From positions 1 to 51,928 of the forward strand of contig MCFE01000624.1 of NCBI GenBank assembly GCA_002104905.1: a stretch of DNA of 51,928 bases. Reading direction: 5' to 3'. Both the position numbers and the translations under genes were made by a program. Positions 15,701 to 40,800 of the stretch are shown piece after piece. Position 1 is the stretch's first letter. Each line of letters opens with the position of its first letter. Under the pieces are notes generated by a model. It was not told where the DNA came from, ran no database searches, and was given only the letters and a program-made list of their open reading frames with translations. This DNA is from Basidiobolus meristosporus CBS 931.73 (lineage: Eukaryota; Fungi; Basidiobolomycota).

Positions 15701-16137
15701 TAATATTAGGATGGTACTATGCTGGCCCCATAGTTGATTTCTAGGGTTGTCAATGGCTAGTTGTTTGTAGAAGTCTACTAGTTCAGCCACTAATAACAAA
15801 GCTGTTTCATAGTATTATGTTGATATATATCAGGCTATCTATCTGTCCTCAAAACCCCTGTCACTGATATAGGTGCAAACTGTTGTAGGAGTTTGATGAT
15901 ATTAGAAGTGATTGGTAGCAGAAGTATATCATGGAATTCTCATTTAATGATTTATTGCATTTAAAATTGGTGTTGATACTTTAATATAATCATGCAGATT
16001 AAACATATAGAATATGTGTAGGAAGGTCCCAACAATATGTATACAAAGAATGTGGTAATTTAACAACTTTGTGAAATTTATGTTTTGGTTACCTGATGTT
16101 GTGGAGAAATGTTTGATAAGTGCATCTTAGCAAGGAT

Positions 16138-16840
16138 CTCTACAAGAAAAAATTCTGATGATCCCATTAAAAGATCATCACAAAATTAAGATCCCCTGAT
16201 TAAGAGGTATTGGTCCTGTCAGGACACTGTGGTAGGACCATCAAGATAAATGCCCCCAAGTTTCCACAAAAAATTTGGTCAAATGATTTTGTTAAAACTA
16301 TACAAAAGTGGCTTTTGATTGGTTCTCTGCTAATTTTCTCACTTTCTGATCCTGGACACTCTACCACCTCCTATGTTTGTGTGCATTGATTGGCTATTGC
16401 CTCTTTTTCACACTCCTTACTTCCTGACTCACCCATTGCTCTTACTTTTTATGCATACAAATTGGTTATATCTGTTGAAACTTCAGTTGTACCTCAGTTG
16501 CCAGTTATATTGACTTATACAAGTACCTATACCAAACACTAATGTTAAGCCCAACACCACACTCATCAAGTAACTCCATTAAATTCCACCATTCAATATG
16601 TATTTCTGCTATAATGCCCTTTTTTCATGACTTTGGCAGGAACCCTACAGCTTCATGCTACTGTTCATTTACTGGTTCCCATACATCCTGGTCTTCAGCT
16701 GGCACTGCAAGGCCTAGCACTTCATCTGCCAGTCTTTGCAATAGATACTCTTAATATTCAAGTGTATTTTCCTTTGCACTGCTCTTGAAGAAGTACTGCA
16801 ACCACTTGGTATGCCTATTAATGTTCCAACATGGCCTTTT
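16138..16840 (-). mobile_element. Truncated copy of a putative CACTA/CMC-like element end (terminus plus 3' part of cargo gene); inverted relative to 21000-21723
   Basis: Begins CTCTACAAGAAAA at 16138. Its reverse complement aligns over ~700 bp with 21000-21723, including the coding tail (AEDQDVWEPVNEQ; IEWW-LMELL-ECGVGLN). Confidence 0.55.
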
Positions 16841-17155
16841 GGGATGTAGCCCCACTTGTTGCACTGAATGTCAGAGCAAGCTGTGTTCTAACCATTCTTC
16901 TTCAGCTGTCAGCAGTGGGGTTTGGTTGGGAACCAGACAACTTTGCTTTATTTGAGGTGGCATGTGTATAGATGTAAGTCCATCCATATGGGGCATAGTG
17001 TTGCATATACATGTGTAAGTGATGCCACAGCTTCATTTATAATGCTTACCATGGTGGGTGATCATTGAATCTTACATTCATGCAGGTGCAATGTCTCAGA
17101 TAAAAGACTGTCTTATAATGCCATGTATATAAACAAAAAAGTGCTAAAATACCTT

Positions 17156-17724
17156 TGTAGTGGGGTCACAGTGGTACCCACTGACAGGTGGGCCTATTCC
17201 TTTATTTCCTACATCCCTAGTTCTCTACTACCTGTATTTTAGTTTGATCTCATTTGTCTGATCTGATCAGAACTATCCCATAAGCTGGCTAACTACAATA
17301 CCTGCTTATTTATTGCATAAGTCATTCCACATTTGATGTAAGATTACTAAATGTAAGTGCTTCTATATTAGACAAGTACCTGCACCAGGACCCATGACAT
17401 ATGATCAAACTGTGCCACCATCCCTACCAATATCATTCCATATATGGCATCCTAATGTTACACAGGTCTCAGAATACTGATCCCTGATTGGTTGGATGTG
17501 CTGTACCTCTTAGAGCCTTCTGTCATCTACTTGCAACATTCTTAGCTCATTCTGATGTCATTGGGATTTCTATTGATCTCCAGAACTCTCTGGAACACCA
17601 TGATTAGTAATCACTTAGCCAGTGAGAACAGTATATAAGGGAGGCAATCCTTCAGCAATAAACCATCCCTTTATCAATTTATCTACTTGTTGATTAGTGT
17701 GATCACTGCTACCTACTGTTACCA
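17156..17724 (+). repeat. Degenerate LTR-like repeat (copy 1)
   Basis: Starts TGTAGT and ends ...ACCA; contains TATATAA and AATAAA. Shares ordered blocks with 19256-19829 (ACCATCCCTACCA, TACACAGGT-TCAGA, GGTTGGATGTGC, TGATGTCAT, TTAGTAATCACTT, GATCACTGC). Confidence 0.55.
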
Positions 17725-19255
17725 GAACTTCCAACCCCAGACCACAGGACACTCCCAGGAAACCATGCTGACAGCCAACTGACCTTGGAGGCACTACTTG
17801 TGAGGAATAATCAGAGTTGGTATCTTTTATTATATTTCATTCCTTCCAAAGTTTGTTCTTGCACAGGCAAAGATACTTTTCTCTCTTTGTAACTATCAAC
17901 CACGTTTGCATTCTTATCAAGTCCCTACTGGTGGAGTTTACAGTTGTTTTGACTTTGGAAGCTTTAGTACATTGTCATCTCAAAGGAAGTTGAGCCCAGC
18001 ACATACTTTTGTTAAGTTGCCAACTAAGTTGGGGATTGTAGCTAAATAGTTCTCACTTGACAAGCTTGTGGCTTTATTCCCCTTTGTGCTAGAGTAGAGA
18101 CAGAACAAATATACTTGTAGCAAGCTTTTGCCTGAGGTTATTGCACCCAGTGAGCACCCCACTCACAAAACACTTGAGAAGTGTTGGATGTATCTCTCCA
18201 TTGGACTAATACACCACCATGCCATTATCTTATTGGGTGTCAAGCTGTTTGCCCCATGGACATTGTGGTTTATCACTGACTGTACTTAGTAGTTGGGAAC
18301 AAATGTAGGTCAAGTCACTACCACCTGGTTTGGAGTGGCTTCCAATAAAAGGTAGCAAGGTAATAAAGACTTGTGTTTATTACACTGAAATCTGACTCCC
18401 TCAACTTGACTCAATTGACTATATTTGTATCTCACTCACAGGGGCTTAGGTAATTGACAATGTGTTGTAAAATAGGCATGTGAACAAAATCCTGTTGTGG
18501 TAAGTATTCTAACTAGGTAAGGACTGGAGCAGGAGGAAGGACATGTGAGAGAATCATAGGGAGGATACTGGGGGACTTTGGGTAGGGCTTGGGGGGAACT
18601 TCTGGGGGAACTCTTGGACAAGTAGTGAGTACTATATTTAGTACTCACATATCCAGGGGTTAAGATGGAGCTTTGTCCCTTATGATCCATGACTAACTTG
18701 CTTTTCCAGGGTCACCTTTGTTTACAGTACATGGGGAGTTGTTATAGTACCATTATAGGTTGTCACTTGTAAGAGGATTGTGGGCATATGCTTGATGCTA
18801 TTTAGCAACAGAGTGGGGTGCAGCTTGGGTTGCTTAAGGGATGCTCTCCACAGAGCCAAACAATTGGCAAACTATAAGGTTTGGGGTGAGTTCATTGAGG
18901 TGATTGGAGAGCTAGAAGAGATGCAGTAACAAAATAAGGTCTTGCTTCATTATCTTGCAAGTATTTTAGGGGCTTGTCCTTGTGGTATTCAACTTGAGGG
19001 CAGGGGCTCTTTTGAAGAAGGCATATACTGGTTGGCAATACTCTGTTGTCAATAACAAGCTTTTGCTTCCTCAGAGACATAATGTAGTTCTTCTGTAGTG
19101 AATGTGGCACAATCAAGGTGTTTATGCACTTGCCTTATTGTTTCTATAGAGATGTGACAGTTTCTTCAGCTTCTTGGAGTTGGACTTTATAGTAGCTTCT
19201 GAGTTGCCCCATTGTGAGCCACTAAACAGATGGAATACTGCAACTTGGTGGATTG

Positions 19256-19829
19256 TGTTGTGGTAGGGTAAACATACCTCCCACAGACAGGTTTATCCAT
19301 AGAGGTATTATAATGCACTTATGATATTTTATCTTATCAGTACTATCCCATTCTTCTTTGCCCATAGTATTAGTATTATCTCCATATGATGTTACTTCTG
19401 ATTGGTTGTTAGCATTAGTTATCCCAGATGTTATTCAGCTTTGTGATCAGTATATGTGTTTACATTCACCAAGTACCTGTGTCAGTACCTGAGACACATG
19501 ACCTAAGTCTGTGTTACCATCCCTACCATTCCAATACCATATATAGAATCTCTATGCTACACAGGTTTCAGACTGCTGATCCTTGGTTGGTTGGATGTGC
19601 AGTGCCTTTAAGAACCTTCCAGGACCTTCTTGGCATTGTTTAGCTCATAGTGATGTCATCAAGAATTCCACTGATGCCTGGAATTTTCTAGAACCTTGTG
19701 GTTAGTAATCACTTGGCAATCAGGAAAAGTATTCACGGGAAGTCAATCCCTCATCAATAAATCATCACTTCTGTCAGTAACACTTCTCCCTTATTGATTA
19801 GCAGTTGATCACTGCACCTGCCTTCAACA
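19256..19829 (+). repeat. Degenerate LTR-like repeat (copy 2)
   Basis: TGTTG...CAACA termini; diverged direct repeat of 17156-17724. No matching TSD was found and no recognisable pol lies between the two copies. Confidence 0.55.
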
Positions 19830-20257
19830 GTACATCTCAGACCTACCATCAAGGAGCTTTTCAGGTTAGTACACAAGACACACAGAGGCCTTTGGAGACA
19901 CTTGGAGCACCTAGAAAGCTAGAGAAGCAGGAGCTTTTACCATAGTGACATATTGACAAAGACACCAGCAGTTTAGACACAGAGGTTATTGCACCTATCA
20001 GACACCTCACACACCTTGAGTTGTGTAGCATCTCCCAGGAGTACCTCTACATCACCACAATGCCATCACCTTAAGGCCGGCATACCATGGGACCATCAGG
20101 AACTCAAGGCCAAGCAGAATGCACTTGACTTGTTCCATGAGCATTATCCTGGATTCAAACGGGCAAATGGATTTTGGGCCAGCATTGGTATGCTAAGAAA
20201 GTATATCAAGAGTAGCAGAAACTATCAAAGGCAGAATAACAAAGGTGCCATGGCTAA

Positions 20258-20675
20258 AAACCAGCAGCTTCCTCAAGCGCCTGTTACAACAAGCCCAAAA
20301 GCTCCCAACAAGCGTCAAAGAGATGTCAGGCAGCTGGAAGAGTGCCAATTAGGGACAAGCAGGCAGACATGGATGCACCAGCACAACATTTATCAAGGAA
20401 AAAGCATAGTACCACTCAAGAAGCACCCAGTCAAAATAGCAGTGAAAGACCTGGCAGTGATAAAAACCAGCTGCTTTTACAGGAGCCCATCACAACTACA
20501 GTTAAGAGCTCAAAACAAGCTGAAAAGCAACATCAGGTTGCCAGAAGAGAGCCAGCAAGGGACAAGCAGGCCAAAACAAATGTGTTAGAGCAGAATTTAT
20601 CCAGGAGAAAACATAGTTCTTTATAAGAAGCACTCAGACAAAGTAGCAGTGAGAGACCTGGTAGTGAAAAAGGAA
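20258..20675 (+). repeat. Two diverged tandem units of ~207 bp (~69 codons)
   Basis: AACCAGC(A/T)GCTT at ~20258 and ~20465. Paired blocks AGGGACAAGCAGGC, ATTTATC(A/C)AGGA(A/G)AAA, CATAGT and AGCAGTGA(A/G)AGACCTGG(C/T)AGTGA. Confidence 0.75.
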
Positions 20676-20999
20676 AGGTAAAGGGAAAAATGTCTATCCA
20701 AGCCTGAGACAGAGAGGCATGCAAAAAAAACTGCAGTTCTTGCCAATCAACGCTGCAAGCCAGGAACAGACTGAAACTCATCATAGCCAAGAAGAATTAC
20801 CAACAAGAAAACAGCTGTTCTCACAAGAGTTGGAAGTGCAGCCAGTTGAGCTACACTCCAGCAAGGCAGATGAGTTTGCTGAAAAAGGCAATTTGTCTAC
20901 CACAGCATTCACAGCCTCCATTGTTGACAGAGTGGAGATCCCACTGACAGACAAGGCTACAATGTCATGTGCTGAAAAGACTATCACAATGCCTTCAGT

Positions 21000-21723
21000 G
21001 GAGTTTTGGAACATCAATAGGCACACTAAGAGGTTGCAGCACTTCTTTGAGAGCAGTGCTCAAGAAAATGCACAGGAATATTGCAAGGATTTATTGCCAA
21101 GACTGGTAGATGAGGAGCTAGACCTTGCTGTGCTGGCTGAAGACCAGGATGTGTGGGAACCAGTGAATGAACAGTGGCATAAAGCTGTTGGGTTCCCACC
21201 AAAGTTATCAAACCAGAGCGCTACAGCAGAAATACTTATTGAGTGGTGGATTTTAATGGAGTTACTTGCTGAGTGTGGGGTTGGGCTTAATATGAGTGTG
21301 GGGTTGGGCTTAATATTAGTGTAGGGTATAGGGACTTGTATAGGTCAATTCAATTGGCAATTGAGGGACAACTGAAGTTTCAACAGAAATAAATCAATTT
21401 ATACACATGAAAAGTAAGAGAAGCGGTTAAGTCAGGAAGTAAAGAGTGTCAAAAAGAGGCAATAGCCAATCAAACAGCACAAGTGTAGGAGGCAATAGAG
21501 TGTCTGGGATCAGAAAGTGAGCAAATTGGCAGGGAACTAATCAAAAGCCACTTATACATTGTTGTGATGAAAAATTTTGACCAAGTTATTTGTGAAATCT
21601 GGGGTACAATTATTTTTCAATGGTCTCTGGACAATGTCTTGACAAGATCAGTACCTCTTAGTCACGGGACTTTCACTTTGTGACAGTCTTTTGATGGGAT
21701 CATCTCAATAATTTTTCATAGGG
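21000..21723 (+). mobile_element. Second copy of the putative CACTA/CMC-like end (terminus TTTTTCATAGGG at 21712-21723)
   Basis: Inverted homologue of 16138-16840. The terminus (reverse complement CCCTATGAAAAA) abuts Copia gag sequence, which starts exactly at 21724. Confidence 0.55.
21271..21316 (+). repeat. Perfect 23-bp tandem duplication
   Basis: GAGTGTGGGGTTGGGCTTAATAT twice; only one unit is present in the inverted copy near 16540-16565. Confidence 0.9.
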
Positions 21724-24070
21724 TACCCTGCTTGTGGATGGGATGGAATCTCTGGGTGTATCAGCTACTGATGAGGATGTGATAGTAAACATTCTGAATA
21801 GCCTGAAAGACAAGTCTTATGGCCTTGTATCTGCCCTAGAGTCCATAACTGAAGATTTGACCTTAATTTACGTATATAGATAGCACCTGGATGAAGAATT
21901 AAGAAAATCTAGCACCAAGATGAAGGAAGAAGCAAATGCATTAATAAGCAATGATAACCAACAAAGGAGATGCCTAAGAGCACTTGAAGGCAATAGAAAC
22001 TTGTCTTGCATCTACTGTAATAGCAAAGGACACACATCTAACCAGTGCCTGAAAAAGAGAGATGGTCAGCAGAATAAGCCTGAATATAGAAATGCTTCAA
22101 CAACTGAAGATATACTATTCACATCTGCGCTTAATATGAATACAAACAAGGATTCTCAGATGTGGCATACTGACTCTTGAGCTTCTCATAACTTTACCAA
22201 CCAAAAAGAGCTTTTTACCCAATATCAAGAAACTCCAGTTAAAAAGGCTTTCATGGGCAACATCAGAACACTGGATTCAGTGGGAGAAGGAACTACTCAA
22301 GTAAGCCTTAGAAGCAGTGAAGGAAGCCATACACAGACATTTAAAGAATTACTATATGTACTAGAAATAGCCAAGAACCTACTATCTGTAAGCAAGGCCA
22401 CTGCAGAAGGACTCAGTTTTGACTTTGACAATTCTGATTGCAGGATCACTGATCAAAATGGTGCTCATATTGCTTTGGGTATCAGAGGTCAGAATCTGTA
22501 TAAGTTGACTTATATTCCATTATATCTCAAAGCCAGTATAAGTAACTTAAATGAAAAAACAGCAATGCTTTTGCACTGAAGATTTTGACACATCAATTTT
22601 GATTATTTGCGCAAAATGATCAAAGATCAGCTAATTTCTGCAGTAAGATCAATTCCTCTGCTAATTTGGAGCATTGTAAAGCCTGCACATATGAGAAATA
22701 AGCCAGACAACAGTCCAAGAGCTTAGGGTTAAACAATGTTAAGAAAAATTAGATCTAATTCACTCAGATCTGAGTGGACCTAAACAAAATTTATCCTTAA
22801 GTGGGATGAAGTATTAAATCACTTTTATTGACAACTGTACAAGATACCCATGGGTGTACTTCACAGAGAGAATAAAAGATGCTCTGGTTAAGCTCAGGGA
22901 GCTTAAAGCCATGGTGGAGAGAGAAACTGAGGATAAATCAAGGAAATATGCTTTGACAATGCTGGTAAATGTTCCTCAGAACTCTTCATCCGCTTCTGCA
23001 AAATTCATGGGACAAAGCAAGAGACTGCTGTACCATACTCCCCACAGCAAATGGAGTAGTAGAATGTGCAAACAGATCACTGATGGCAAGATCTATGATC
23101 CCTGATTGAAAATTATCCTGCAATATTGGGTAGAATTAGTTGCCACAGCTATACACCTTAGGAATAGGAGTTATAACAAAATACTTTGTGATTCCACTCC
23201 ATTTGAAGCATGGTATGGATAAAGATCAAGCACAGAACATCTAAGAATATCTGGGTGTACAGCATATGCCAAGAAACTGTCTGGAAATTAGTCAAAGTCT
23301 GAGCCAAAAAGTGTAAAATGCATATTTTTGGGCTACTGCAATGAGAGTAAAGCATACAGACTCAACAATACCAAAGCAAAGTAGCTGCTCAAGTTCAGGG
23401 ATGTGCTGTTTGATGAAAATTCAAAATTTTCACAAATAACAACATTAGATGATGACAAAAATCTGATCTCAAGTCCACCACTTGCCTGGATTGAGTCAGA
23501 GCAAAACAATAGATGTTTTTCACTCCAGAGGACTCTACAACTGTGGTTCAGCCTGAATCAGTGTCCAGAAATGTTCCAAAATTGATCATTCCAGTATCAA
23601 ATGCCCAGAGTTCCAACAGGACAAGAAATAGCCCAATTTACTCTATCAATGAGGGAACAAACTTAGCCTATGCCGATTCAGTCCATATTGATGGGCCCCA
23701 GACTGTAAAAGAGGCCTTGAATATGTTTTAAAATTTGTATTTCCACCTAAATATTCACCTAACTTAGTCACTTAGATCATCACCTTCAAATCCTAGAGAA
23801 TACTGACCAAATTCCTTGTCGGGATTTACTTAGAATATTTTCACCAAAATACCAGGTACCAAGAACATGAAAATTCTCAAAGTTGTCCAAACAGCCCCAA
23901 ACTTTGCACACATGTTCTTGGGACCTTCCTTAACCTATTCTATGTGTTTGTAATGCCAAGACCAGGTTAAAGTATAAATACCACTTTACATTCAATAAAT
24001 CATTAAGTGAAAACCACATAATCTACTTGTTCTCCAAATCACTTCCAATATCTCCAAGACTCTTACAACA

Positions 24071-24083
24071 GGTTATGAGCCCC
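24071..24083 (+). promoter_or_regulatory. Primer-binding site of half-tRNA-iMet type (also at 32209-32221; GGTTATGGGCCCC at 29492-29504)
   Basis: GGTTATGAGCCCC lies directly after the LTR's CA and is complementary to the iMet anticodon stem-loop (CAU), as in Ty5 and Drosophila copia. Confidence 0.9.
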
Positions 24084-27000
24084 AAGCTGTCACTCTCTGC
24101 AATGTCTACTACTGCTATTACTGGAATTTTTCCCTCTGCTGAAAAGTTGGATGGCTCTAACTACCAAGTGTGGAAGGTGAAGATGAAGATGCTGCTACAA
24201 GAAAGAGGCCTTTGGGATATTGTCATGGGAGAAGAATGACCTCCTAAAAACGTGGAAGAGGAAGCCTTAAAGTACCAGAAGAAAGAACAAAGTGCCTTTA
24301 ACTGCATTTGCCTTAATGTCAAGGACAAATTGCTAATTCAATGCTCAAGAGCAAAAACGGCAAAGAATGCCTGGAAAGCATTGGAAGACACCTACCAGTC
24401 ATGTTCAGCTGCCAAGAAAATGTATCTGAGACAAAAATTCTTTACTACAAAGATGCTGCCAGGAGAAGAAATGAAAAATCTAATTAACAGAATTACCCGG
24501 CTGGTAGATGAGATGGAATCTGTGGGCGTACCAACTACTGATGAGGATGTGATAGTTACCATCCTGAATAGCCTGACAGACAAGTTTCAGGGCCTTGTAT
24601 CAGCCCTAGAGTCCAGAACTGAAGATTTGACCTTAAATTACGTATATGGAAGGCTTGTGGATGAAGAATTAAGAAAATCAAGCGCTAATAAGAAGGAAAA
24701 AGAAAATGCCTTAATAAGCAATGATAGCCAACAAAAGAGATACCCAAGACCCTACAAAGTCAACAGCAACCTATTTTGCAACTACTGCAAAAGGAAAGGA
24801 CACACTTCAGACCGGTGTTTCAAAAAGAGAGATTATCAGCAAAAGAAGCCTGAATATGGAAATGCTGCAACAACTGAAGATAGACTATTCATATCTGCAC
24901 TAAATATGACCACAAACAAGGATTCTCAGACGTGGTATATTGACTCTGGAGCTTCTCAACACTTTACACACCAAAAAGAACTTTTTACCCAATATCAAGA
25001 AATTCCAATTAAGAAGGTTTTCATGGGTGACAATAGAACACTTGATGCAGTCGGAGAAGGAACTATCCAAGTAAACCTTAGAAGCAGTGAAGGAAGCCAT
25101 ACACTGACCTTTAAAGAAGTACTCTATGTACCAGAAATAGCCAAGAACCTACTCTCTGTAAGCAAGGCCACAGCAGAAGGACTCAGTTTCAGTTTTGACA
25201 ATTCTGGATGCAGGATCACTGATCAAAATGGTGCTCATATTGCTTTGGGCATCAGAGATCAGAATCTATACAAGTTGACTTATATTCCATCATATCTGGA
25301 AGCTAATATAAGTAACTTGAATGAAGAAACACCAATGCTTTGGCACAGGAGATTTGGACACATCAATTTTGATTATTTGCACAAAATGATCAAAGATCAG
25401 CTAATTTCTGGAGTGAAAATTGATCCCCCAGCTAATTTGGAGCACTGTGAAGCCTGCATATATGGAAAACAAGCCAGACAACCATTCAAGAGCTCTGGGT
25501 TAATCAATACTAAGAAAAAATAGATCTAATTCACTCAGATCTGTGTGGACCTATGCAAAATTTATCCTTAGGCGGGGTGAAGTATTTAATCACTTTTATT
25601 GATGATTATACAAGATACACATGGGTCTACTTCATGGAGAGAAAGAAAGAAGCTCTGTCTAAGCTCAGGGAGTTTAAAGCCATGGTGGAGAGAGAAACTG
25701 GTGAAAAAATCAAGAAAATACGCTCTGACAATGGTGGAGAATATACCTCAAAACTCTTCATCCACTTCTGCAAAATTCATGGGATAAAGCAAGAGACTAC
25801 TGTACCATACTCCCCACAGCAAAATGGAGTAGCAGAACAAGCTAACAGATCAATAATTGATATGGCAAGATCTATGATCCATGATCAAAAATTATCCTAT
25901 GATTTTTGGGCGGAATCAGTTGCCACTGCTGTATACCTTAAAAATAGGAGTTATAACAGAATACTTTGTGATTCTACTCCATTTGAGGCATGGTATGGAT
26001 ACAGACCAAGTGCAGAACATCTAAGAATATTTGGGTGTACAGCATATGCCAAAAAACTGGCCAGAAATCAGTCAAAATTTGAGCCAAAAAGTGTAAAATG
26101 CATATTTTTGGGCTACTGCAATGAGAGTAAGGCATACAGACTCTACAATACCAAAGCAAAGAAGCTTATCAAGTCCAGGGATGTGTTTTTTGATGAAAAT
26201 TCAAAATTTTCACAAAAAATGACATCAGATGATGACAAAAATTTGATCTCAAGTCCACCAATTGTCAGGATTGAATCAGAGCAAAACAATGAAAATTTTT
26301 TCACTCCAGAGGACTCTACAACTGTGGATCAGCCAGAATCAGTGCCCAGGAATATCCCAGAAGTGATCATTCCAGTATCAAATGCCCGGAGATCAAACCG
26401 GACAAGAAATAGCCCAAGTTACTATATCCATGAGGGTACAAACTTAGCCTATGCCTATTCAGTCCATATTGATGAACCCCAGACTGTAAAAGAGGCCCTA
26501 AATAGCCCTCAGACAAAGTTTTGGAGATCTGCAATGACTGAGGAATATCAGGCACTGATGGAAAATCAAACTTGGGACTTGGTCAAATTACCAATCAACC
26601 AAAAATCAATTGGATGCCAATGGGTCTTCAAGACAAAATACAAGGCTGATGGTACAATTGAAAGATACAAAGCAAGACTTGTAGCCAAAGGATACTCTCA
26701 AACAAAAGGACTTGACTATACTGAGACCTTTGCACCGGTAGCCAAGTTTAATTCCATCAGATTAATATTGGCAATTGCAGCCAAATATAAGTTTTTTATT
26801 CATCAAATGGATGTAAAAACTGCATTTTTGAATGGAGAACTTGATGAGAACATGTATATGAACCAGCCTGATGGGTTTGTTGACCAAGATAACCCCCATT
26901 TGGTCTGCAAGCTTAAAAAGTCACTATATGGTCTCAAACAATCACAAGAGCCTGGAATTGCAAGATAGATTCTTTTTTGGAATCTTTGAGTTTCAAAAGA

Positions 27001-28044
27001 AGTAATGCTGACTATAGTATATACTATAAGCCAGATAGAGCAAATCCAGTTCTATTAACTCTATATGTGGATGATCTTATTATAGCCGCCAATAACCTAG
27101 AAACATTGGAAGAGACTAAATCCAGCCTATCTAAGGAGTTAAAGATGTCTGATTTAGGAGAACTTAGTTACTACTTAGGGATTAAGTTCTCCATAGACAG
27201 AAGTACCCAGACAATTACCCTAAGCCAATCCAAGTATATTCAAGATATACTAAAGAAGTACAAAATGGAAGACTGTAAACCAGCAGCTACCCCAATGGAG
27301 ACAAACCTTAACTTGGTCAAAACTCAACCAAATCAAGAGAGCTTGGTGCCATCTGAAAGCCCTGACTTTCCTTATCAATCTATGGTCGGCAGTCTGATGT
27401 ATGTTATGCTTGGAACATGTCCAGATATCTCATATTCAGTGGGAGTTGTCAGCCAACATAATCAGAATTATGGATCTGATCATATTGCAGCAGTTAAGTG
27501 GATTTTTAGATACCTAAAAGGAACTGCTAATATCTGTTTAAGATACACGTAAAAGGATTCAGAACAGGATCTTGTGGGATACTCTGATGCTGATTGGGGA
27601 CAAAATTTGGAAGACAGAAGATCCACCACAGGATACACCTTTCTTTACTGTAAAGGAGCAATCTCATGGAATTCAAGAAAGCAACCAACCGTAGCACTTT
27701 CCACCACAGAGGCAGAGTATATGGCAGCCTGTGAAGCTACAAAAGAAGCAATGTGGTTAAGAAAGCTCTTTGCAGATTTAGGCCTATGTCAAAAAACGCC
27801 TATTACTTTATTTCAAGATAATCAAGGATGTATACAATTAGGTAGAAATCCAACTTTTCATGCCAGAACCAAGCACATAGATATTAGACATCATTTCATA
27901 CGTGAAGCTATAGAGAATAACTTGGTTAGCTTAGTTTACTGCTCTACAGATGAAATGATTGCAGACATATTTACCAAACCATTAGCTAGAGACAAGTTTG
28001 AATATCTTAGGTCAAAATTGGGACTAGTCAGTATGAACATTTAG
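24075..28044 (+). pseudogene. Copia A gag-pol with four lesions
   Basis: Compared with copy B: TGA at 24237-24239, 1-nt deletions near 25521 and 26945, and TAA at 27550-27552. Confidence 0.92.
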
Positions 28045-29001
28045 CTGAGTGGGAGTGTTGTAAAAATTTGTATTTCCACCTAAATATTCACCTAACTTAG
28101 TCACTTATATCATCACCTTCAAATCCTAGAGAATACTGACCAAATTCCTTGTCAGGATTTACTTAGAATATTTTCACCAAAATACCAGGTACCAAGAACA
28201 TGAAAATTCTCAAAGTTGTCCAAACAGCCCCAAACTTTGCACACATGTTCTTGGGACCTTCCTTAACCTATTCTATGTGTTTGTAATGCCAAGACCAGGT
28301 AAAAGTATAAATACTACTTTTACATTCAATAAATCATTAAGTGAAAACCACATAATCTACTTGTTCTCCAAATCACTTCCAATATCTCCAAGACTCTTAC
28401 AGCAGAATAGCACTCAGACAAATCTTTGGAGATCTGAAATGACTGAGGAATATCTAGCCCTGATGGAGAATCAAACTTGGGACTTTTTTCATTTCATATA
28501 TGAAGCCACAGAGAATAACTTGCATAACTTAGCCTACAGTCCTTCAGATGAAATGGGTGCACACATACTCACCAAACCATAAGTTAGAGACAAGTTTGAA
28601 TATCTTAGGTCAAAATCAGGACTAATAAGTATAAGCATTTAGTTGAGTGGGATTGTTGTAAAAGTTTGTAACTACACCTAAACATTCCCCTGTCTTGGTC
28701 ACTTAGATCCTTACATTCAAGTTCTAGAGAATACTCACCAAAATCTTTGTTGGGATTTACCTCAAATATTTTCACAAAATATTAGGTACCCAGAACATGA
28801 AAGTTCTCAAAGTTGTTCAAACAGCCTCAAACTCTGCACACATGTATTTGGAACCTTCCAAGACCTATTCTTTGTATTTTTTATGCCACTATCATGTAAA
28901 AGTATAAAAAGTATTATCACAATCAATAAATTGATATGTAAAAAACACATAATCTACTTGTTCTCCTAATCACTTCCAATATCTCTAAGACTCTTATAAC
29001 A

Positions 29002-29146
29002 ATATTAATTCATATGTATTGATTAGTATTAGACATGTGAGTCTACTTCATCAAGAGAAAGAAAGATGTTATGTCTTAGTTCAGGGAGTTTAAAGCCATG
29101 GTGGAGAGAGACACTGATGAGAGAATTTGGTAAATATGCTTGGACA
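29002..29146 (+). mobile_element. Integrase fragment of the oldest Copia copy 'E', between D's 3' LTR and C's 5' LTR
   Basis: Aligns to the copy-A segment encoding KYLITFIDD...FKAMVERETGEKIKKIRSD and ends at ...GGACA immediately before the next LTR. Confidence 0.7.
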
Positions 29147-29915
29147 TGTTGTAAAGCTTTGCAATTAAGCCTAAATATTCACTTGACTTAGTCACTTGGT
29201 GCATTAATAAAAATCAAACAGAACACTGACCAAACTCTTTGTTGGAACTACTTGAAATATTTACACCAAATACCAGGTACCCAAAACATGAAAGTTCTCA
29301 GAGTTGTTGGAACAGCCCAAAACTTTGCTCAAATATTCTTGGGACCTATCTGAATCTATTCTACATGCTTACTCTACCTAGACCATGAAAAAGTATAAAA
29401 ACTACTTTTATATTCTATAAAACATTGAGCAAAACCACATAATCTACTTGTTCCCCCAATCACATTCAATATCTCCAAGACTCTTACAACAGGTTATGGG
29501 CCCCAAGCTGTTACTCTCTGCAATGCTCACTACTACTACTACTGGGGTTTTTCCCTCTGCTGAAAAGCTGTATGGATCCAACTACCAGGTGCAGAAGGTG
29601 AAGATGAAGATGATGCAGCAGGAAAGAGGCCTCTGGAATGTTGTCATGGGAGAAGGATGCCCTACTAAAATGTGGCAGAGGGATCCTTGAAGCAGCAGAG
29701 GAATGAACAAAGTGCCTTTAACTGCATTTGCCTTGATGTCAAAGAAATAATGCTAATTCAATGATCCAGAGCAAAAAAGCAAAGAATGCCTGGATGGCAT
29801 CAGAAGACACCTATCAGTAATGCTCAGCTGCTAAGAAAATGTATTTTAGACAAAGATTCTTTGCCACAAGGATGCTGCCAGGAGAAGAAATTAGCAATCC
29901 AATTCACGGAATTAC

Positions 29916-30611
29916 TGTAGTGCATCAACAATTATAAACTTGGCCAACTTTGCTATGTTGGAAAATCTAGCACCCTAACTGATATTGCATAGGCCAAACA
30001 TAACTATTTGCATTAAGGGTTTATTTTATCCCACCACTGAATCCTTTTTAGCTGTCACACCTGATCAATTTTCCTGTGGTCATTAAATCCTAAACTGATC
30101 TGCTAAGCATTTCAAAGTGGTTAGTCATCTGAGACCTATCCAACCATTTAGCTACTGCCAAGACATCTGCTGATTGATAATGCAATTTTCTTTATCATAT
30201 GCACCTATCAACACCAAAACTGATTTCAATTAATTCTGTCTCTTGGCACTAGCTGATTGAACATGATAAGAGAAGTATTAATAAAGTTTATTGAGCCTTT
30301 TGGCTTAGTGTGTGTCATGACCATATTAAGATTGTATCTCAGCAAAATTGAGAATTCAACAATTCTGTTCTAGTTTCTACCCAAGCTGAGCATATCTAGC
30401 ACTCACAAGAACACCAAGCCTAGCCTGCATAGCAAACCAACTTTGTTACCATTCTAGCCAAACCCAGTTTTATAGAAGACCAATATTGGACCAGAATCTC
30501 TCTGCTAATAAATTCACCACTCTGACAACTCTAAGATTCTTCACTTAGTTGTCCCTTTGGCTGAGTTACATAATTCAAGAGTTTAATTACACTTTCCACT
30601 TAGATATAAGA
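29916..30611. mobile_element. ~700-bp AT-rich insertion in gag of copy C (solo-LTR-like)
   Basis: gag breaks after GGAATTAC and resumes at (A)CTACTCTGCTGGTGGATGAG. The insert starts TGTAGTG; candidate 5-bp TSD ATTAC / ACTAC. Confidence 0.55.
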
Positions 30612-31859
30612 ACTACTCTGCTGGTGGATGAGATGGAATCTGTGGGCATACCAACTACTGATGATGATGTGATAGTTGCCATCCCAAATAGTCTGACAGA
30701 CAAATTTCTGGGCCTTTTATCAGCCTTGAGTTCCAAACTGAAGATTTGGCCTTAAATCATGTATATGGAAGGCTCCTGGATGAAAATTTAAGGAAGTCAA
30801 GCACCAATAAGAAGGAAGAAAATGCCTTAATAAGCAATTGTAACCAATAAAGGAAGGTATCCAAGACCTTTAAAAGGCAAAAGCTGCCTGTTTTGCAACT
30901 ACTGTAAAAGGAAAGAACACACATCCAAGTAGTACCTCAAAAAGTGAAATAGTCAGCCGAAAAACCCTGAATATTGAAAGTGCTTCAACAACTGAGGATG
31001 AACTATTCATATCTGCACTAAATATGACCACAAACAAGGCTTCTTAAATGTGGTGCATTCACTGTGAAGCATCTCAACACTTTACAAACTAAAGACACCT
31101 TTGTATCCAATACCAAAGATTCCAATTAAGAAAGTTTTAATGGGTCACAATAGCGCAATTGATGTAATGGGAGAAGTACTTATTCAATTAAACCTCAGAA
31201 GCAGTGAAGGATGCTATACACATACCTTCAAAGAAGTACTCTATGTACCAGAAATAGGTAAAAGCCTACTCTCTGTAAGTAAGGCCACAGCAGAAGGACT
31301 CAGTTTCAGCTTTGAAAATTCTGAATGCAGAATCACTAATCAAATGATGCCTATATTGCTATGTGTACCAGTGATCAGAATCTATTCAAGTGGGTTTATG
31401 TTCCATCATATCTGGAAGCCAGTGTAAGTAACTTAAATGAAGAATCACCAATGCTTTGACACAGAAGGCTTGGACACTTCAATTTTGATTATTTGCACAA
31501 AATGATCAAAGATCAGCTAATTTCCAGAGTAAACATTGATCTTCCAGCTAATATGGAGTACTGTAAAGCCTGCATAAGTGGGAAACAAGCCAGATAACTA
31601 TTCAAGAGCTTTGGGTTAATCAAAACTAAGGGAAAACTAGATCTAGCTCACTCAGATCTGTGTGGACCCATGCTAAGTTTATATGTAAGTGGGATGAATT
31701 ATTTAATCACTTTATTGATGACTGTTAAAGATACTCATGGATGTACTTCACAGAGAGAACAGAAGATGCTCTGTCTAAGCTCAGAGAGCTTAAAGCCACG
31801 GTGGAGAGAGAAACTGGAGAAAAAAACAATAAAATATGCTCTGACAATGGTGGAAAATA

Positions 31860-34800
31860 TGTTGTAAAAATTTGTATTTCCACCTAAATATTCACCTAAC
31901 TTAGTCACTTATATCATCACCTTCAAATCCTAGAGAATACTGACCAAATTCCTTGTCGGGATTTACTTAGAATATTTTCACCAAAATACCAGGTACCCAG
32001 AACATGAAAATTCTCAAAGTTGTCCAAACAGCCCCAAACTTTGCACACATGTTCTTGGGACCTTCCTTAACCTATTCTACGTGTTTGTAATGCCAAGACC
32101 TTGTAAAAGTATAAATACTACTTTTACATTCAATAAATCATTAAGTGAAAACCACATAATCTACTTGTTCTCCAAGTCACTTCCAATATCTCCACGACTC
32201 TTACAACAGGTTATGAGCCCCAAGCTGTCACTCTCTGCAATGTCTACTACTGCTATTACTGGAATTTTTCCCTCTGCTGAAAAATTGGATGGCTCTAACT
32301 ACCAAGTGTGGAAGGTGAAGATGAAGATGCTGCTACAAGAAAGAGGCCTTTGGGATATTGTCATGGGAGAAGAATGCCCTCCTAAAAACATGGGAGAGGA
32401 AGCTTTAAAGAACCAGAAGAAAGAACAAAGTGCCTTTAACTGCATTTGCCTTAATGTCAAGGACATATTGCTAATTCAATGCTCAAGAGCAAAAACGGCA
32501 AAGAATGCCTAGAAGGCATTAGAAGACACCTACCAGTCATGTTCAGCTGCCAAGAAAATCTATCTGAGATGAAAATTCTTTACTACAAAGATGCTGCCAT
32601 GTGAAGAAATGAAAAATCTAATTAACAGAATTACCCTGCTGGTAGTTGAGATGGAATCTGTGGGCGTACCAACTACCAATGAGGATGTGATAGTTACAAT
32701 CCTGAATAGCCTGACAGACAGGTTTCAGGGCCTTGTATCAGCCCTAGAGTCCAGAACTGAAGATTTGACCTTAAATTACGTATATGGAAGGCTCCTGGAT
32801 GAAGAATTAAGAAAATCAAGCGCTAATAAGAAGGAAGAAGAAAATGCTTTAATAAGCAATGATAGCCAACAAAGGAGATACCCAAGACCCTACAAAGGCA
32901 ACAGCAACCTATTTTGCAACTACTGCAAAAGGAAAGGACACACATCAGACCGGTGTTTCAAAAAGAGATATTATCAGCAAAAGAAGCCTGAATATGGAAA
33001 TGCTGCAACAACTGAAGATAGACTATTCATATCTGCACTAAATATGACCACAAACAAGGATTCTCAGATGTGGTATATTGACTCTGGAGCTTCTCAACAC
33101 TTTACACACCAAAAAGAACTTTTTACCCAATATCAAGAAATTACAATTAAGAAGGTTTTCATGGGTGACAATAGTACACTTGATGCAGTGGGAGAAGGAA
33201 CTATCCAAGTAAACCTTAGAAGCAGTGAAGGAAGCCATACACTGACCTTTAAAGAAGTACTCTATGTACCAGATATAGCCAAGAACCTACTCTCTGTAAG
33301 CAAGGCCACAGCAGAAGGACTCAGTTTCAGTTTTGACAATTCTGGATGCAGGATCACTGATCAAAATGGTGCCCATATTGCTTCGGGCATCAGAGATCAG
33401 AATCTATACAAGTTGACTTATATTCCATCATATCTGGAAGCCAATATAAGTAACTTGAATGAAGAAACACCAATGCTTTGGCACAGGAGATTTGGATACA
33501 TCAATTTTGATTATTTGCGCAAAATGATCAAAGATCAGCTAATTTCTGGAGTGAAAATTGATCCCCCAGCAAATTTGGAGCACTGTGAAGCCTGCATATA
33601 TGGGAAACAAGCCAGACAACCGTTTAAGAGCTCTGGGTTAATCAAAACTAAGAAAAAATTAGATCTAATTCACTCAGATCTGTGTGGACCTATGCAAAAT
33701 TTATCCTTAGGCGGGGTGAAGTATTTAATCACTTTTATTGATGATTATACAAGATACACATGGGTCTACTTCATGGAGAGAAAGGAAGAAGCTCTGTCTA
33801 AGTTCAGGGAGTTTAAAGCCATGGTGGAGAGAGAAACTGGTGAAAAAATCAAGAAAATAAGCTTTGACAATGGTGGAGAATATACCTCAAAACTCTTCAT
33901 CCACTTCTGCAAAATTCATGGGATAAAGCAAGAGACTACTGTACCATACTCCCCACAGCAAAATGGAGTAGCAGAACAAGCTAACAGATCAATAATTGAT
34001 ATGGCAAGATCTATGATCCATGATCAAAAATTATCCTATGATTTTTGGGCGGAATCAGTTGCCACTGCAGTATACCTTAAAAATAGGAGTTATAACAGAA
34101 TACTTTGTGATTCTACTCCATTTGAGGCATGGTATGAATACAGACCAAGTGCAGAACATCTAAGAATATTTGGGTGTACAGCATATGCCAAAAGACTGGC
34201 CGGAAATCAGTCAAAATTTGAGCCAAAAAGTGTAAAATGCATATTTTTGGGCTACTGCAATGAGAGTAAGGCATACAGACTCTACAATGCCAAAGCAAAG
34301 AAGCTGATCAAGTCCAGGGATGTGTTGTTTGATGAAAATTCAAAATTTTCACAAAAAATGACATCAGATGATGACAAAAATTTGATCTCAAGTCCACCAA
34401 TTGTCAGGATTGAATCAGAGCAAAACAATGAAAATTTTTTCACTCCAGAGGACTCTACAACCGTGGTTCAGCCAGAATTAGTGCCCAGGAATATCCCAGA
34501 AGTGATCATTCCAGTATCAAATGCCTGGAGATCAAATCGGACAAGAAATAGCCCAAATTACTATATTAATGAGGGTACAAACTTAGCCTATGCCTATTCA
34601 GTCCATATTGATGAACCCCAGACTGTAAAAGAGGCCCTAAATAGCCCTCAGACGAAGTTTTGGAGATCTGCAATGACTGAGGAATATCAGGCCCTGATGG
34701 AAAATCAAACTTGGGACTTGGTCAAATTACCAATCAACCAAAAATCAATTGGATGCCGATGGGTCTTCAAGACAAAATACAAGGCTGATGGTACAATTGA

Positions 34801-36527
34801 AAGATACAAAGCAAGACTTGTAGCCAAAGGATACTCTCAAACAAAAGGACTTGACTATACTGAGACCTTTGCACCGGTAGCCAAGTTTAATTCCATCAGA
34901 TTAATATTGGCTATTGCAGCCAAATATAAGTTTTTTATTCATCAAATGGATGTAAAACCGGCATTTTTGAATGAAGAACTTGGTGAGAATGTGTATATGG
35001 ACCAGCCTGATGGGTCTGTTGACCAAGATAACCTTCATTTGGTCTGCAAGCTTAAAAAGTCACTATATGGTCTCAAACAATCACCGAGAGCCTGGAATTG
35101 CAAGATAGATTCTTATTTGGAATCTTTGAGTTTCAAAAGGAGTAATGCTGACTATTGTATATACTATAAGCCAGATAGAGCAAATCCAGTTCTATTAACT
35201 CTATATGTGGATGATCTTATTATAGCCGCCAATAACCTAGAAACATTGGAAGAGACTAAATCCGGCCTATCTAAGGAGTTCAAGATGTCCGATCTAGGAG
35301 AACTTAGTTACTACTTAGGGATTAAGTTCTCCATAGACAGAAGTACCCAGACTATTACCCTAAGCCAATCCAAGTATATTCAAGATATACTAAAGAAGTA
35401 CAAAATGGAAGACTGTAAACCAGCAGCTACCCCAATGGAGACAAACCTTAACTTGGTCAAAACTTAACCAAATCAAGAGAGCTTGGTGCCATCTGAAAGC
35501 CCTGACTTTCCTTATCAATCTATGGTCGGCAGTCTGATGTATATCATGCTTGGAACATGTCCAGATATCTCATATTCAGTGGGAGTTGTCAGCCAACATA
35601 ATCAGAATTATGGATCTGATCATATTGCAGCAGTTAAGCGGATTTTTAGATACCTAAAAGGAACTGCTGATATCTGCTTAAGATACACTTATAAGGATTC
35701 AGAACAGGATCTTGTGGGACACTCTGATGCTGATTGGGGACAAAATTTAGAAGACAGAAGATCCACCACAGGATACACCTTTCTTTACTGTAAAGGAGCC
35801 ATTTCATGGAATTCAAGAAAGCAACCAACCGTAGCACTTTCTACTACAGAGGCAGAGTATATGGCAGCCTGTGAAGCTACAAAAGAAGCAATGTGGTTAA
35901 GAAAGCTCTTTACAGATTTAGGCCTATGTCAAAAAACGCCTATTACTTTATTTCAAGATAATCAAGGATGTATACAATTAGGTAGAAATCCAACTTTTCA
36001 TGCTAGAACCAAGCACATAGACATTAGACATCATTTCATACGTGAAGCTATAGAGAATAACTTGGTTAGCTTAGTTTACTGTTCTACAGATGAAATGATT
36101 GCAGACATATTTACCAAACCATTAGCTAGAGACAAGTTTGAATATCTTAGGTCAAAATTAGGACTAGTCAGTATGAACATTTAGCTGAGTGGGAGTGTTG
36201 TAAAAATTTGTATTTCCACCTAAATATTCACCTAACTTAGTCACTTAGATCATCACCTTCAAATCCTAGAGAATACTGACCAAATTCCTTGTTGGGATTT
36301 ACTTAGAATATTTACCCAGAACATGAAAATTCTCAAAGTTGTCCAAACAGCCCCAAACTTTGCACACATGTTCTTGGGACCTTCCTTAACGTATTCTACG
36401 TGTTTGTAATGCCAAGACCATGTAAAAGTATAAATACTACTTTTACATTCAATAAATCATTAAGTGAAAACCACATAATCTACTTGTTCTCCAAGTCACT
36501 TCCAATATCTCCAAGACTCTTACAACA
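31860..36527 (+). mobile_element. Near-complete Ty1/Copia LTR retrotransposon 'B', TSD AAATA/GAATA
   Basis: LTRs at 31860-32208 (349 bp) and 36196-36527 (332 bp, 17-bp internal deletion). PBS at 32209; PPT before 36196; flanks AAATA (31855-31859) and GAATA (36528-36532). Confidence 0.97.
32213..36184 (+). pseudogene. Copia B gag-pol: single frame interrupted by three stops
   Basis: ORFs 32081-32512, 32591-35467 and 35483-36184 are in one frame. Stops are TAG 32510-32512, TGA 32570-32572 and TAA 35465-35467. Confidence 0.93.
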
Positions 36528-37204
36528 GAATATACCTCAGAGCTCTGCATACACTTATGCAAGATTGAAAGGATAACACAAGAGACTACTGTACAATACT
36601 CCCAATGGCAAAATGGAGTAGTGGAATGGGCAAACAGATCAATAATTGCTATGGCAAGATCTCTGTTCCATGATAAAAATTATGCATGACTTTTGGATGG
36701 AATCAGTTGCCCCAGCTGTGTACCTTAGAAGTAGGAGTTATAACAGAATACTTTGTGATTCTACTCCACTTAAGGCATGTTATGGATACAGTACAAGTGC
36801 AGAACATCTAAGAATACTTGGGTGCAGAGCATATGCCAAGAAACTGCCCAGAAATCAGTCAAAATATCAGCCAAAAAGTGTAAAATGCAGATTTTTGGGC
36901 TACTGCAATGAGAGTAAAGCATACAGACTCTATAGTACCAAGGCAAAGACGCTGATCAAGCTCAGGGATGCGTTGTTTGATTAATATTTGAAATTTTCTC
37001 AAAAAATAATATTAGATGATGACAAAAATCTTATCCCAAGTCCACCACTTGTCTGGATTGAATCAGAGCAAAACAATATATATTTCTCACTCCAGAAGAC
37101 TCTGAAATCATGGTTTGGCCTGCCTCAGTGCCCAGGAATATCTTTCAAGTGTTCATTCCAGTATCACAAACCAGAAGATCCAACTGGACCAGAAATAGCT
37201 CAGA

Positions 37205-37515
37205 TTGTGAATTTTGTAATCACAAGTATATACTTGATTAGCTTGATCACTGAAATCATATTCTGTGATGCTTTGAATATCTAGTCCAAGCTCCTTGCCA
37301 GAATTTGCTTTGAGTATTTTTGAGTAACATTGGGCACAAAGACCACAAAAAGCTGACAAGTTTTCCAAGGACCCCCAAAGTTTGCACAAATGCTACCAAA
37401 TCTATCCTAAGCATACTCTATATGCTGGCTCTATCAATACTATGTAGAAGTGTAAACATTACTTCTACATTCAATAAACCGTTGAGTAAGACCAAAAAAT
37501 CTACTTTGTCAATGT
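37205..37515 (+). repeat. Diverged LTR related to the Copia family LTR, 3'-truncated
   Basis: Ordered similarity: AAGTTTTCCAAGGACCCCCAAAGTTTGCACA, AGTGTAAACATTACTTCTACATTCAATAAA and AATCTACTT versus the family's AAGTTGTCCAAACAGCCCCAAACTTTGCACA, AGTATAAATACTACTTTTACATTCAATAAA and AATCTACTT. Confidence 0.65.
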
Positions 37516-37557
37516 TCTGTGCAGGATTGTGGTATAGGTATAGTGCTTGCTCACCAT

Positions 37558-37830
37558 TGTTCCAATAATTTGGGAGATCCGGGAAGTAACTAGGGGAGCT
37601 GGCATATGATTCGGTTTCACCAAATGATTTATTGATACATGCATATATAAGATCCCGACAAAAATGTGTATTGGATCTCCGGAAAAGTCCCGAGAATGTG
37701 TGGGTATAGTTTAGGGTCTTTTGGACAACTTTGAGTTCTCATATCCGGGGTACCTGACATTTTGATGAAAGATATTCCAAGTGGCTAAGTTAACAAATAC
37801 ATTTCGGTGTAAATACAATACTCACTTATT
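37558..37830 (-). repeat. Inverted LTR related to the Copia family, CpG-rich
   Basis: The reverse complement contains TTGTATTTACACCGAAAT, TAACTTAGCCACTT, CAGGTACCCCGGATATGAGAACTCAAAGTTGTCCAAA and TCAATAAATCATT, and ends ...GGAACA. Confidence 0.7.
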
Positions 37831-40800
37831 TGTTTGACTTGAAATTTGGTTGAATTTTAACCCCTTGATTGCAGACTTCCACAAAACGTAGAGTCATCTA
37901 ACGTGTGCCGGTCGATACTTATTTATACTGTCATCAAATCTTACTGAACTGATAAAATATGCTTCAGATTTAGACTCGATTTTAAATAGCATTGATGAAG
38001 CGTGAAGTTGTATTGTATGCTAGTTTAGAGCCAGAATTCCCCAAAACTCCGAAATGATATTATGATTGTGACTAATGATGCGGGAAACCACGAATAAAAG
38101 TAATTAACAATGCTGTGATTTCATTACACCAACTGACAGGAGGAGCACACTTAGCTTCAGTAGCAGGCCAGGTATGCTTTGAAGGCCAAAAATGGCATAA
38201 ACTGGATGTATACATGAGCTTAATACGGGAGAACAGTGAAGTACCAAGTGTACTTTGATCACAAAAACCAGTAACTTATTCCCCGGTTGTTTAAACCTTA
38301 AACCATACATAGTGATATTTAACACTTGCGCACTGATAGGTGCTCTGGTTGAGGATAACAAGAAATGCACCTCCGGTGGATGCTTACAAAACTGCAGGTT
38401 CCATTTTGGAAATTGCTTATACTTTGTATCTCCATTGTTCATACGTTTAATATACAGAGAACAAGCCGCCTGTATTTAGTTGGGTACCACACCTTTCATC
38501 TGTGGTATATATAACATAGTATACATTCATCCATTGTCCGGCCGCGGTAGCAGTACAGATGTTTTGCGTAAATTACCCAAACGCAAGGGTTTAGTAAAGA
38601 AACAGTAAAAATCCCGCTGTCGGTTTTTGATTGTTTCTTCCGAGAGGAGCGTGGATACTTGGAATTCATTTCATTAATAGTCGTCTGTGCTAGGAACCAA
38701 TATCGCAGCTCACATTCTCGTTTTCATTTGGCGGTGGGGTTTGCTTGTCTTTGGATTTGGCGAATGGTCAAAAGATGGTTACTTTCGGGGGGGGGTCCAA
38801 ATGCTCACCAACCACGAAATCCCTTTTCTAGATAGTATGAGGTTCCATGAGACTATGCCCCAGCACTGAATGCTATGTGATAAATCATGCAGCCGAAATA
38901 GTATGATGTAGCTAGTCAAGGTATGGGCTATTCATCTATAATTATTCGATATTCTTACATGACGAATGGTATATACCGATCCTGATAAATATGGAATATT
39001 TCTAATCACCAAACGGAGTAGCGTGTCGTGTCCGGATACATAATGAGGCGCTAAACCAACTTCGTTCAAAAATAACCAGATTCGTGGCCATTCTGAAAGA
39101 ATGTCTAACAATAGTGATTGCGATCCAACAAATCGGAGTGCTTGATGACCTAATTCTCAGCACAGCATTCCAATTCTTACGAAATTGAATGGCATCAGGG
39201 ATCCCAGCTGATGGGCCAAGATGTCCAAAATGAACGAGTTTTCATCATTACTTTATCGTCCTCACTGCCCAGCGATTCTTCTTTATATGGATGTGAATGA
39301 AGTCAATGTTCCTTTTGATGGATTGGGTATGCGGAACGATGCTATTTGGAGACCATTACATGTTCTCAAGGTAATCCAGCTGTAATGTCGATACCCAAAA
39401 TGCTGTATGAGCTGTAGATTTGATACATGCCCGAAAATGTAGTCATAGTACTCCTCACATCTACCCCAGCCATGCATCCATCTGTGCTTGTTAGCGAAAG
39501 CTCCATTTCTGGCTGCCGGTCGATCGAGCAACGCCTGGACAAATCCTGGGCAACCAGGCATGGTTTCCTGGTAATGGCCATCAAGGCTTCGCCACGTAGA
39601 GAAGGTACCTCGATTAGTATCTGCAACAGCTCGTATATGTGTGGATGATTCAAGCGCTCGCCTCTACTTGTCCAGTAACTAGATGAAGACAAGCCCTTGA
39701 CCATAAACATATTGCCAACGAAATGGTGCCCATTCGCTTCTGGCTGGCATTGCCCTATCTAGCAACATGGCGTAACACAGCCAGCTGCCCACAAGTACCA
39801 GTATGATTCCTGGCTGATTGTAATAGGTTACTTTCCATGGCAAACGAAATTCTTTGAAATTTGGTGAGTGCATTGATTGGCTGATACGTTGAGTCATCCG
39901 TGGTTCGGACCTGATCTGCATGTGATTCTGAGCGTTGTGACTATCATTTGGGATTGATCGACACTGGAGGGCAGCTGCCAACAAAGAGCGGGCCTTTTAA
40001 CGCCGGGGTGAGTTGTGGATACGCAAACTCGTCTCCAGGAAGACAACGAGCGACCCACCCCAGGAGCCTTCTTTGTCCCCCAACCATCGGACAAAGAGTG
40101 CGGTACTTTATGCCCGCCAAAAAGTGGCAGCGAGAGTGGGGCCGATCCATGTGCCCTTCTGACTACATCGCCCGTTCACTGGGTTGTTTATAAGAATCGC
40201 GCCATGCTCGGTAGATGTCGATCCACGTGACCGGCAACATCCAACTACAAGCGACTTGCCTGATGACCTTCATCGGCTAGCAAGCGACAATTGCGTAGAC
40301 AAATGTCTGCCCCATCGACCGGTGGGGATTGCTGGGCAAGTCTGTAGCATCGAGGATATTGCTCAAGGATGGTTTCATCGGATCCGTATTTAGATAGCGT
40401 TCTCCGTCATAAGATTTTAAACTTCGGCCAACAGTGGAGTTCAAGATCTCACCTGAAACAATCAAGAACCTTCTAGGAGTCACGATCCGATGACCTCATG
40501 AGGCCGTCGAAAAAGGTTATCGAAGTTCATCTCGGCGGTTAGCACGGCTAGCCATCGGACATATATCCTAATCGGAACAGAGATCCAATGCCAAGAAGCA
40601 TTATTGGGGAGTGTTTTTCCTGGCACAGGGGATCCGCCATTGGGCCAGCGATGCCGAGATGATTCAGGTCTCCAACCCGCTCAATGTTTCCTAATTCGCT
40701 GCCGCTGTCGCTGGCAGCATCGCATGTCGAGCCCAAAGCCCGCAAACCTCGATTGCAATCATCCAGCATATTGGCGATGGCGTCCGTTGATTGGCCGAGC

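Follow-up and report, generated by a model that had tools for sequence, protein, structure and literature searches.

When copies of one retrotransposon family are found inserted into one another, it has to be asked whether the element seeks out its own older copies or whether insertions simply pile up where they are tolerated. This question is raised by a 51,928-nucleotide stretch of the fungus Basidiobolus meristosporus CBS 931.73 (assembly GCA_002104905.1, contig MCFE01000624.1, positions 1–51,928), here called the window, which holds nested copies of a Ty1/copia-type long terminal repeat (LTR) retrotransposon. An earlier note on this DNA had described a Russian-doll stack of one family inserted five times into itself, and had taken it as a sign of guided self-targeting rather than random accumulation. 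The analysis confirmed that the nesting of copia copies is real. The locus is probably, with considerable reserve, an ordinary nested retrotransposon island, formed by accumulation in silenced, harmless DNA through integrase insertion, retention and later deletions.

Nested copia copies and their junctions

The map of the locus was built from BLAST searches, junction reading and alignments. Element A (23724–28404, + strand, 4681 bp) served as the reference ruler, and positions along it are given as ref (ref 1–4681 for A itself). A and a second full-length copy, B (31860–36527, + strand), are young and of similar age, since the LTRs of A (23724–24071 and 28056–28404) are 98.0% identical and those of B (31860–32208 and 36196–36527) are 98.5% identical, plus a 17-bp deletion. 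In comparison, the other LTRs in the window are 57–83% identical among themselves. A and B share 97% identity but differ at 124 positions and are therefore separate copies.

As the earlier note had proposed, A lies in an older copy, D, and B lies in another, C. D is represented on the + strand by a left piece (21724–23723; ref 771–2781, comprising the end of gag, protease, integrase and linker; 86.5% identical to A and matched by tblastn to the B polyprotein) and by two right pieces, at 28405–28485 (ref 2777–2857) and, after an internal deletion, at 28489–29001 (ref 4168–4681, including the 3' LTR at 28654–29001). A entered D at ref 2781 and is flanked by the target-site duplication (TSD) GAATA at 23719–23723 and 28405–28409; uninterrupted copies carry a single AAATA/GAATA at this place. 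C consists of three + strand pieces, at 29147–29915 (ref 1–773, with the 5' LTR at 29147–29491), 30609–31859 (ref 766–2021; 84% identical to A) and 36528–37202 (ref 2017–2699). The last of these stops in the linker between integrase and reverse transcriptase (IN–RT linker). B entered C at ref 2021, with the TSD AAATA (31855–31859)/GAATA (36528–36532), where uninterrupted copies show GAATA once. In the alignments, the host sequence runs on in register across both A and B, each with its TSD. Since clean 5-bp duplications flank both elements, A and B are integrase-made insertions. In both cases the site entered is in the coding interior of the host and not in an LTR.

Between D and C lies a fragment of a further copy, E (29002–29146, + strand; 145 bp, ref 1860–2007, 77% identical to A). 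It belongs to the integrase core, corresponding by tblastn to polyprotein residues 392–426 within the rve domain, and its two edges are the intact end of the D 3' LTR (29001) and the intact start of the C 5' LTR (29147). A degenerate LTR, G (37203–~37515, + strand), begins with an intact 5' end against C in the IN–RT linker at ref about 2699, is truncated at its 3' side and is 64% identical to the A LTR; it is a distant relative rather than a member of the family as usually understood. The proposed insertions of D into E (29001|29002), of C into E (29146|29147) and of a related LTR into the C linker are each supported by a single surviving junction, at which the LTR end is intact; the opposite junction has been lost in every case.

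A single stack five levels deep did not hold up. The pieces are better described as two parallel three-level stacks in E, with A in D on one side and B in C, plus G, on the other, and E would be the oldest + strand copy. Two alternative readings of the junctions were rejected. D and the 5' part of C are not halves of one element: the D 3' LTR and C 5' LTR are 75% identical, below the value of either against A. The E|C junction is not a duplicate of the C|B junction, the LTR starts being 13 bp apart in host coordinates, which marks separate events. D lacks ref 1–770, and C lacks everything past about ref 2699. Since E, D and C have lost their outer halves on both sides, the nest must have been cut back afterwards by two or more deletions or rearrangements; one break lies at 21717–21724, where a repeat termed X abuts D at ref 771, and another within the G LTR near 37500.

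The family can be assigned to Ty1/copia (Pseudoviridae), with integrase ahead of reverse transcriptase. A 958-aa open reading frame (ORF) of B contains, in this order, the Pfam domains Retrotran_gag_2, Pol_BBD, gag_pre-integrs, rve, SH3_retrovirus and RVT_2, and a word-index protein search with the B polyprotein returned copia polyproteins as the closest database proteins. P0022, encoded on a 3.3-kb contig, was the single close relative among them (82%), and the other copia proteins reached at most 46% identity; in a metagenome scan, the LTR end of the family gave no match. The LTRs measure 348 bp and have the ends TGTTG...ACA, which together with the 5-bp TSDs agrees with Ty1/copia (TG...CA ends, 5-bp TSD). 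Directly ahead of the 3' LTR stands the purine-rich sequence GAGTGGGAG, and after the 5' LTR there is a conserved stretch. The gag-pol region of B (32081–36184) is a single frame of 1367 codons with three in-frame stops (codons 144, 164 and 1129), and the reading frame of A is split into four ORFs.

The CpG-erased island and its other sequences

The whole stack is contained in a transposon island of 22.6 kb (14945–37580) from which CpG dinucleotides have been erased. The observed-to-expected CpG ratio is 0–0.2 within the island and 0.65–1.0 outside, with sharp borders: the last regular CpG lies at 14944, and they begin again at 37580. The G+C content drops from 0.45–0.53 outside to 0.34–0.45 in the island, mostly 0.36–0.41. 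All components of the island are CpG-poor, including A and B, which retain 22 and 31 CpGs, respectively, compared to about 166 expected. CpG loss of this kind is the usual footprint of cytosine methylation, and the island was probably methylated, as far as base composition can tell. The nearly unbroken gag-pol frame of B persists despite these CpG-erased surroundings. Ordinary genes flank the island on both sides, with ORFs matching arrestin, TM7S3/TM198, mitochondrial carrier, C2H2 zinc finger and RICTOR domains. No tRNA gene that might act as a landing beacon was found in the 52-kb window.

The earlier note had placed all five insertions on the + strand and none of them in the repeat DNA at 15–21.7 kb, which it called unrelated. 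The six stack pieces A, B, C, D, E and G do share the + strand, but two minus-strand LTR relics at the edges had been overlooked, and one of them falls within that repeat DNA. This left relic (15877–16116, - strand) covers LTR positions about 105–351, is 75% identical to the A LTR and is truncated at about LTR position 105 by the left arm of X; it is a 3' or solo LTR, because no primer-binding site (PBS) follows beyond its end. The right relic (37545–37885, - strand) is 62% identical to the A LTR, and a PBS-like TGG stretch (~37530–37544) comes next on the minus strand. It is possibly what is left of an element of the opposite strand, represented by its 5' LTR, on which the stack was built. 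The right relic still has 7 CpGs, with almost none to its left, and the border of CpG erasure coincides with its junction with G. The two relics might be the LTR pair of one outer opposite-strand element (15877–37885) hosting the whole stack. This is unsupported, the putative TSDs being unmatched (CTACG versus GTTTG) and the relics only 58% alike. By tblastn, no copia coding relics were found at 15–21.7 kb or past 37.2 kb, and to the left of 15877 sensitive local alignment performed no better than on shuffled sequences.

The island also holds sequences unrelated to copia. X is a structure of 5.6 kb (16146–21717) with copia sequence at both outer ends. Its arms of ~700 bp each (16146–16829, - strand; 21006–21717, + strand) form an inverted repeat with 78% identity. 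The outer end of the left arm adjoins the minus-strand relic at LTR position ~105, and that of the right arm adjoins D at ref 771, in place of the 5' part of D. A 23-bp tandem duplication is present in the right arm (21270–21327). In C, a foreign insert of ~690 bp (29916–30608) is edged by an imperfect 7–8-bp duplication (GGAATTAC/AGAACTAC) and resembles neither X nor any other sequence of the window. The X|D break and this insert lie within ~3 bp of each other (ref 770–773), i.e., two unrelated events struck the same spot in two different copies. Since unrelated sequences also broke or entered copia copies, the island behaves as a general sink, which agrees better with these events than one-family homing does.

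No coding relic was recognised in the X structure. About 16 ORF pieces from the DNA at 15–21.7 kb and from the ~690-bp insert had no Pfam match, and one Atlas search was also empty. Two open frames of ~200 codons (19977–20585 and 20668–21321) stand in the CpG-erased repeat DNA; neither matched Pfam, and 20668–21321, the sole one of the two searched in Atlas, had no match there.

Chance, site preference and guidance

Whether landing in the same family requires an explanation depends on how much copia DNA was available. From the coordinates, copia accounted for ~46% of the island (about 6.3 of some 13.5 kb) at the time A and B inserted, and the probability that both landed in copia by chance within the island is about 0.2. 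With a share of ~46%, the same-family landing of A and B is therefore unremarkable. Against the whole pre-insertion window, of which 15% was copia, the corresponding P is about 0.02; this value is tempered by selection, through which insertions in the gene flanks would be lost. Thus, a same-family preference cannot be shown from the window alone. The orientation is alike in all five nestings (P about 0.03, one-sided), and counting every piece, six of eight lie on one strand, which is not significant. The evidence from orientation is weak, and the same orientation of the nested copies is most likely due to chance.

The positions of the insertions weigh against accumulation without any choice of site. 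The five copia insertion points, at ref 1859, 2007, 2021, 2699 and 2781, fall in the integrase core and the IN–RT linker and span 922 of 4681 bp (range test, P = 0.006; P = 0.04 when the first 2857 bp alone are taken as the target). Two of them, C in E and B in C, are 13 bp apart at homologous positions. A and B have the TSD GAATA in common (chance about 0.002–0.003), a 5-mer found at 0.17% of positions in 26.8 kb of island sequence, both strands counted. Their target 14-mers, GAATAGCACTCAGA and GAATATACCTCAGA, lie at ref 2781 and ref 2021, which are not homologous to each other, and match at 11 of 14 bases, a level that in the same 26.8 kb was reached solely by these two targets. With at most one mismatch, the motif GAATA-N3-CTCAGA occurs seven times in the window compared to 1.3 expected, six of the seven at places in copia copies that correspond to these two targets, and the two perfect sites in the 52 kb are the two that were used. 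The motif is absent from the repeat DNA at 15–21.7 kb and from the genes. These clustering and motif statistics are post hoc and concern few events, the motif having been defined from A and B; the older insertions of D, C and G do not use it.

A second lead for guidance comes from the integrase. The IN–RT linker, ~120 residues from the SH3-like domain to reverse transcriptase, varies more than any other part of the polyprotein in comparison with 12 other copia proteins. Within it, A, B and D share the stretch DDDKNLISSPP without change, and C has LIPSPP. The hexapeptide LISSPP occupies polyprotein residues 598–603 (34382–34399 in B) and is kept in copies that are ~80–86% identical at the DNA level. 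The pattern LxSSxP turned up in 0.4% of linker shuffles and in none of the IN–RT linkers of 120 other copia polyproteins, where it was seen in gag alone. LISSPP would fit the Ty5 targeting hexapeptide LDSSPP, with the pattern LxSSxP. By sequence, LISSPP is a candidate motif and a lead for targeting, not a finding. A Pfam scan of the polyprotein revealed no chromodomain, the C-terminal integrase domain that guides chromoviruses, and no other reader domain.

The reading as an ordinary nested island would begin with E as an old copia copy lying between genes in a gene-rich region, perhaps beside or inside an opposite-strand relative. Later copies of the same broad family would have followed by normal integrase action, first D and C in E and then G, together with the foreign insert, in C; last, D would have received A and C would have received B, the two events being close in time. 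Cytosine methylation of the block, whether acquired later or already in place, would have erased its CpGs. New insertions would have been retained in the island as harmless, those in neighbouring genes would have been lost, and the integrase may in addition favour such islands at the level of chromatin. At least two deletions or rearrangements would later have removed the outer half of each of the copies E, D and C.

Two explanations that do without new integrase events find little room beside the junctions. Since A and B are 97% identical, a range in which assemblers can err, an assembly artefact or a segmental duplication might mimic the stack; we consider this highly improbable, as A and B differ at the 124 positions counted above, their hosts are only about 80% alike and were hit at different positions, and each insert is crossed by its host in register with a TSD. 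Recombination of cDNA with resident copies, or gene conversion, could account for same-family hosts and a common orientation, but its expected products are elements in tandem or replaced elements, in either case lacking TSDs. For A and B this entry is ruled out, because their clean 5-bp duplications mark integrase and not cDNA recombination; their LTR termini are intact and their positions in the hosts non-homologous, and the intact termini at the preserved junctions of D, C and G likewise argue against it. For the locus as a whole, it is very improbable. Of the guided self-targeting put forward in the earlier note, the homology route is thus lost to the TSDs of A and B, the same-family preference is unshown at P about 0.2, and the clustering of sites leaves some form of guided target choice possible.

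Such guidance could act on chromatin or on sequence. In the first case, the C-terminal linker of the integrase would act as a tether between the pre-integration complex and some protein of methylated or heterochromatic DNA, in the manner of Ty5 and Sir4, and silenced islands here would happen to be largely old copia. All copies do lie in one CpG-erased island of a gene-rich region, even the young A and B have few CpGs, which a lineage living in methylated DNA would be expected to show, and the linker carries LISSPP, whose rarity in shuffles and other linkers was given above and which would fit the Ty5 pattern. However, no reader domain was found with Pfam, a six-residue match found after looking is weak evidence, and retention by selection accounts for the same distribution. 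In addition, Sir4 is restricted to the Saccharomycetaceae (PMC6394760), and any partner in Basidiobolus would therefore be a different protein. Chromatin guidance is judged unlikely. In the second case, the young subfamily would prefer the asymmetric GAATA-N3-CTCAGA in its own integrase and linker DNA, with GAATA becoming the TSD, so that older family copies would be the best targets and insert and host would share their orientation; each generation of copies would then be a landing pad for the next. The identical TSDs and similar sites of A and B at non-homologous positions, both in sense orientation, point this way, as does the excess of the motif, with its only perfect sites being those used. 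Against it, there are only two events, from which the motif was itself derived; the older insertions of D, C and G do not use it, and LTR-retrotransposon integrases usually show weak, roughly palindromic target preferences. We regard this sequence-directed homing as improbable, and hold the same doubt about its fuller form, in which directional homing on the ~14-bp motif is maybe aided by a Ty5-like tethering of LISSPP to silenced chromatin.

Comparison with known systems

To our knowledge, the choice of harmless sites by retrotransposons has been worked out for only a few yeast, fission-yeast and slime-mould elements. In plants, nesting of LTR retrotransposons is known, as is the preference of some families for their own older copies, termed autoinsertions (Jedlicka et al. 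2019, PMC6911290). There, the regions of the host element are used unevenly, the integrase domain being among the least-hit (PMC6911290). The Basidiobolus locus resembles the plant autoinsertions in that insertion points are uneven along the host element and the centre of the TSD is AT-rich (PMC6911290). It differs in that the integrase core and the IN–RT linker were struck, whereas the plant integrase domain is among the least-hit (PMC6911290), and in that an early-diverging fungus and a small isolated island among genes are concerned.

The yeast element closest to the case is Ty5 of Saccharomyces, which is also of the copia type and integrates into silent chromatin, and the Basidiobolus copies likewise lie in silenced-looking DNA; the short S/P-rich hexapeptide LISSPP of the integrase C-terminal region would fit the Ty5 pattern. 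Ty5 employs a hexapeptide that binds Sir4 (PMC7459421). In contrast, Sir4 is absent outside the Saccharomycetaceae (PMC6394760), and the distribution observed in Basidiobolus may stem from selection alone.

Compared with these systems, the window is a clean example of a known nesting pattern, to which the shared target motif and the hexapeptide in the integrase linker are added as testable leads. Should this copia family indeed direct itself to its own dead copies or to methylated islands, a new natural safe-haven system would be at hand, and with it a way to study heterochromatin recognition in an early-diverging fungal lineage that has received little attention.

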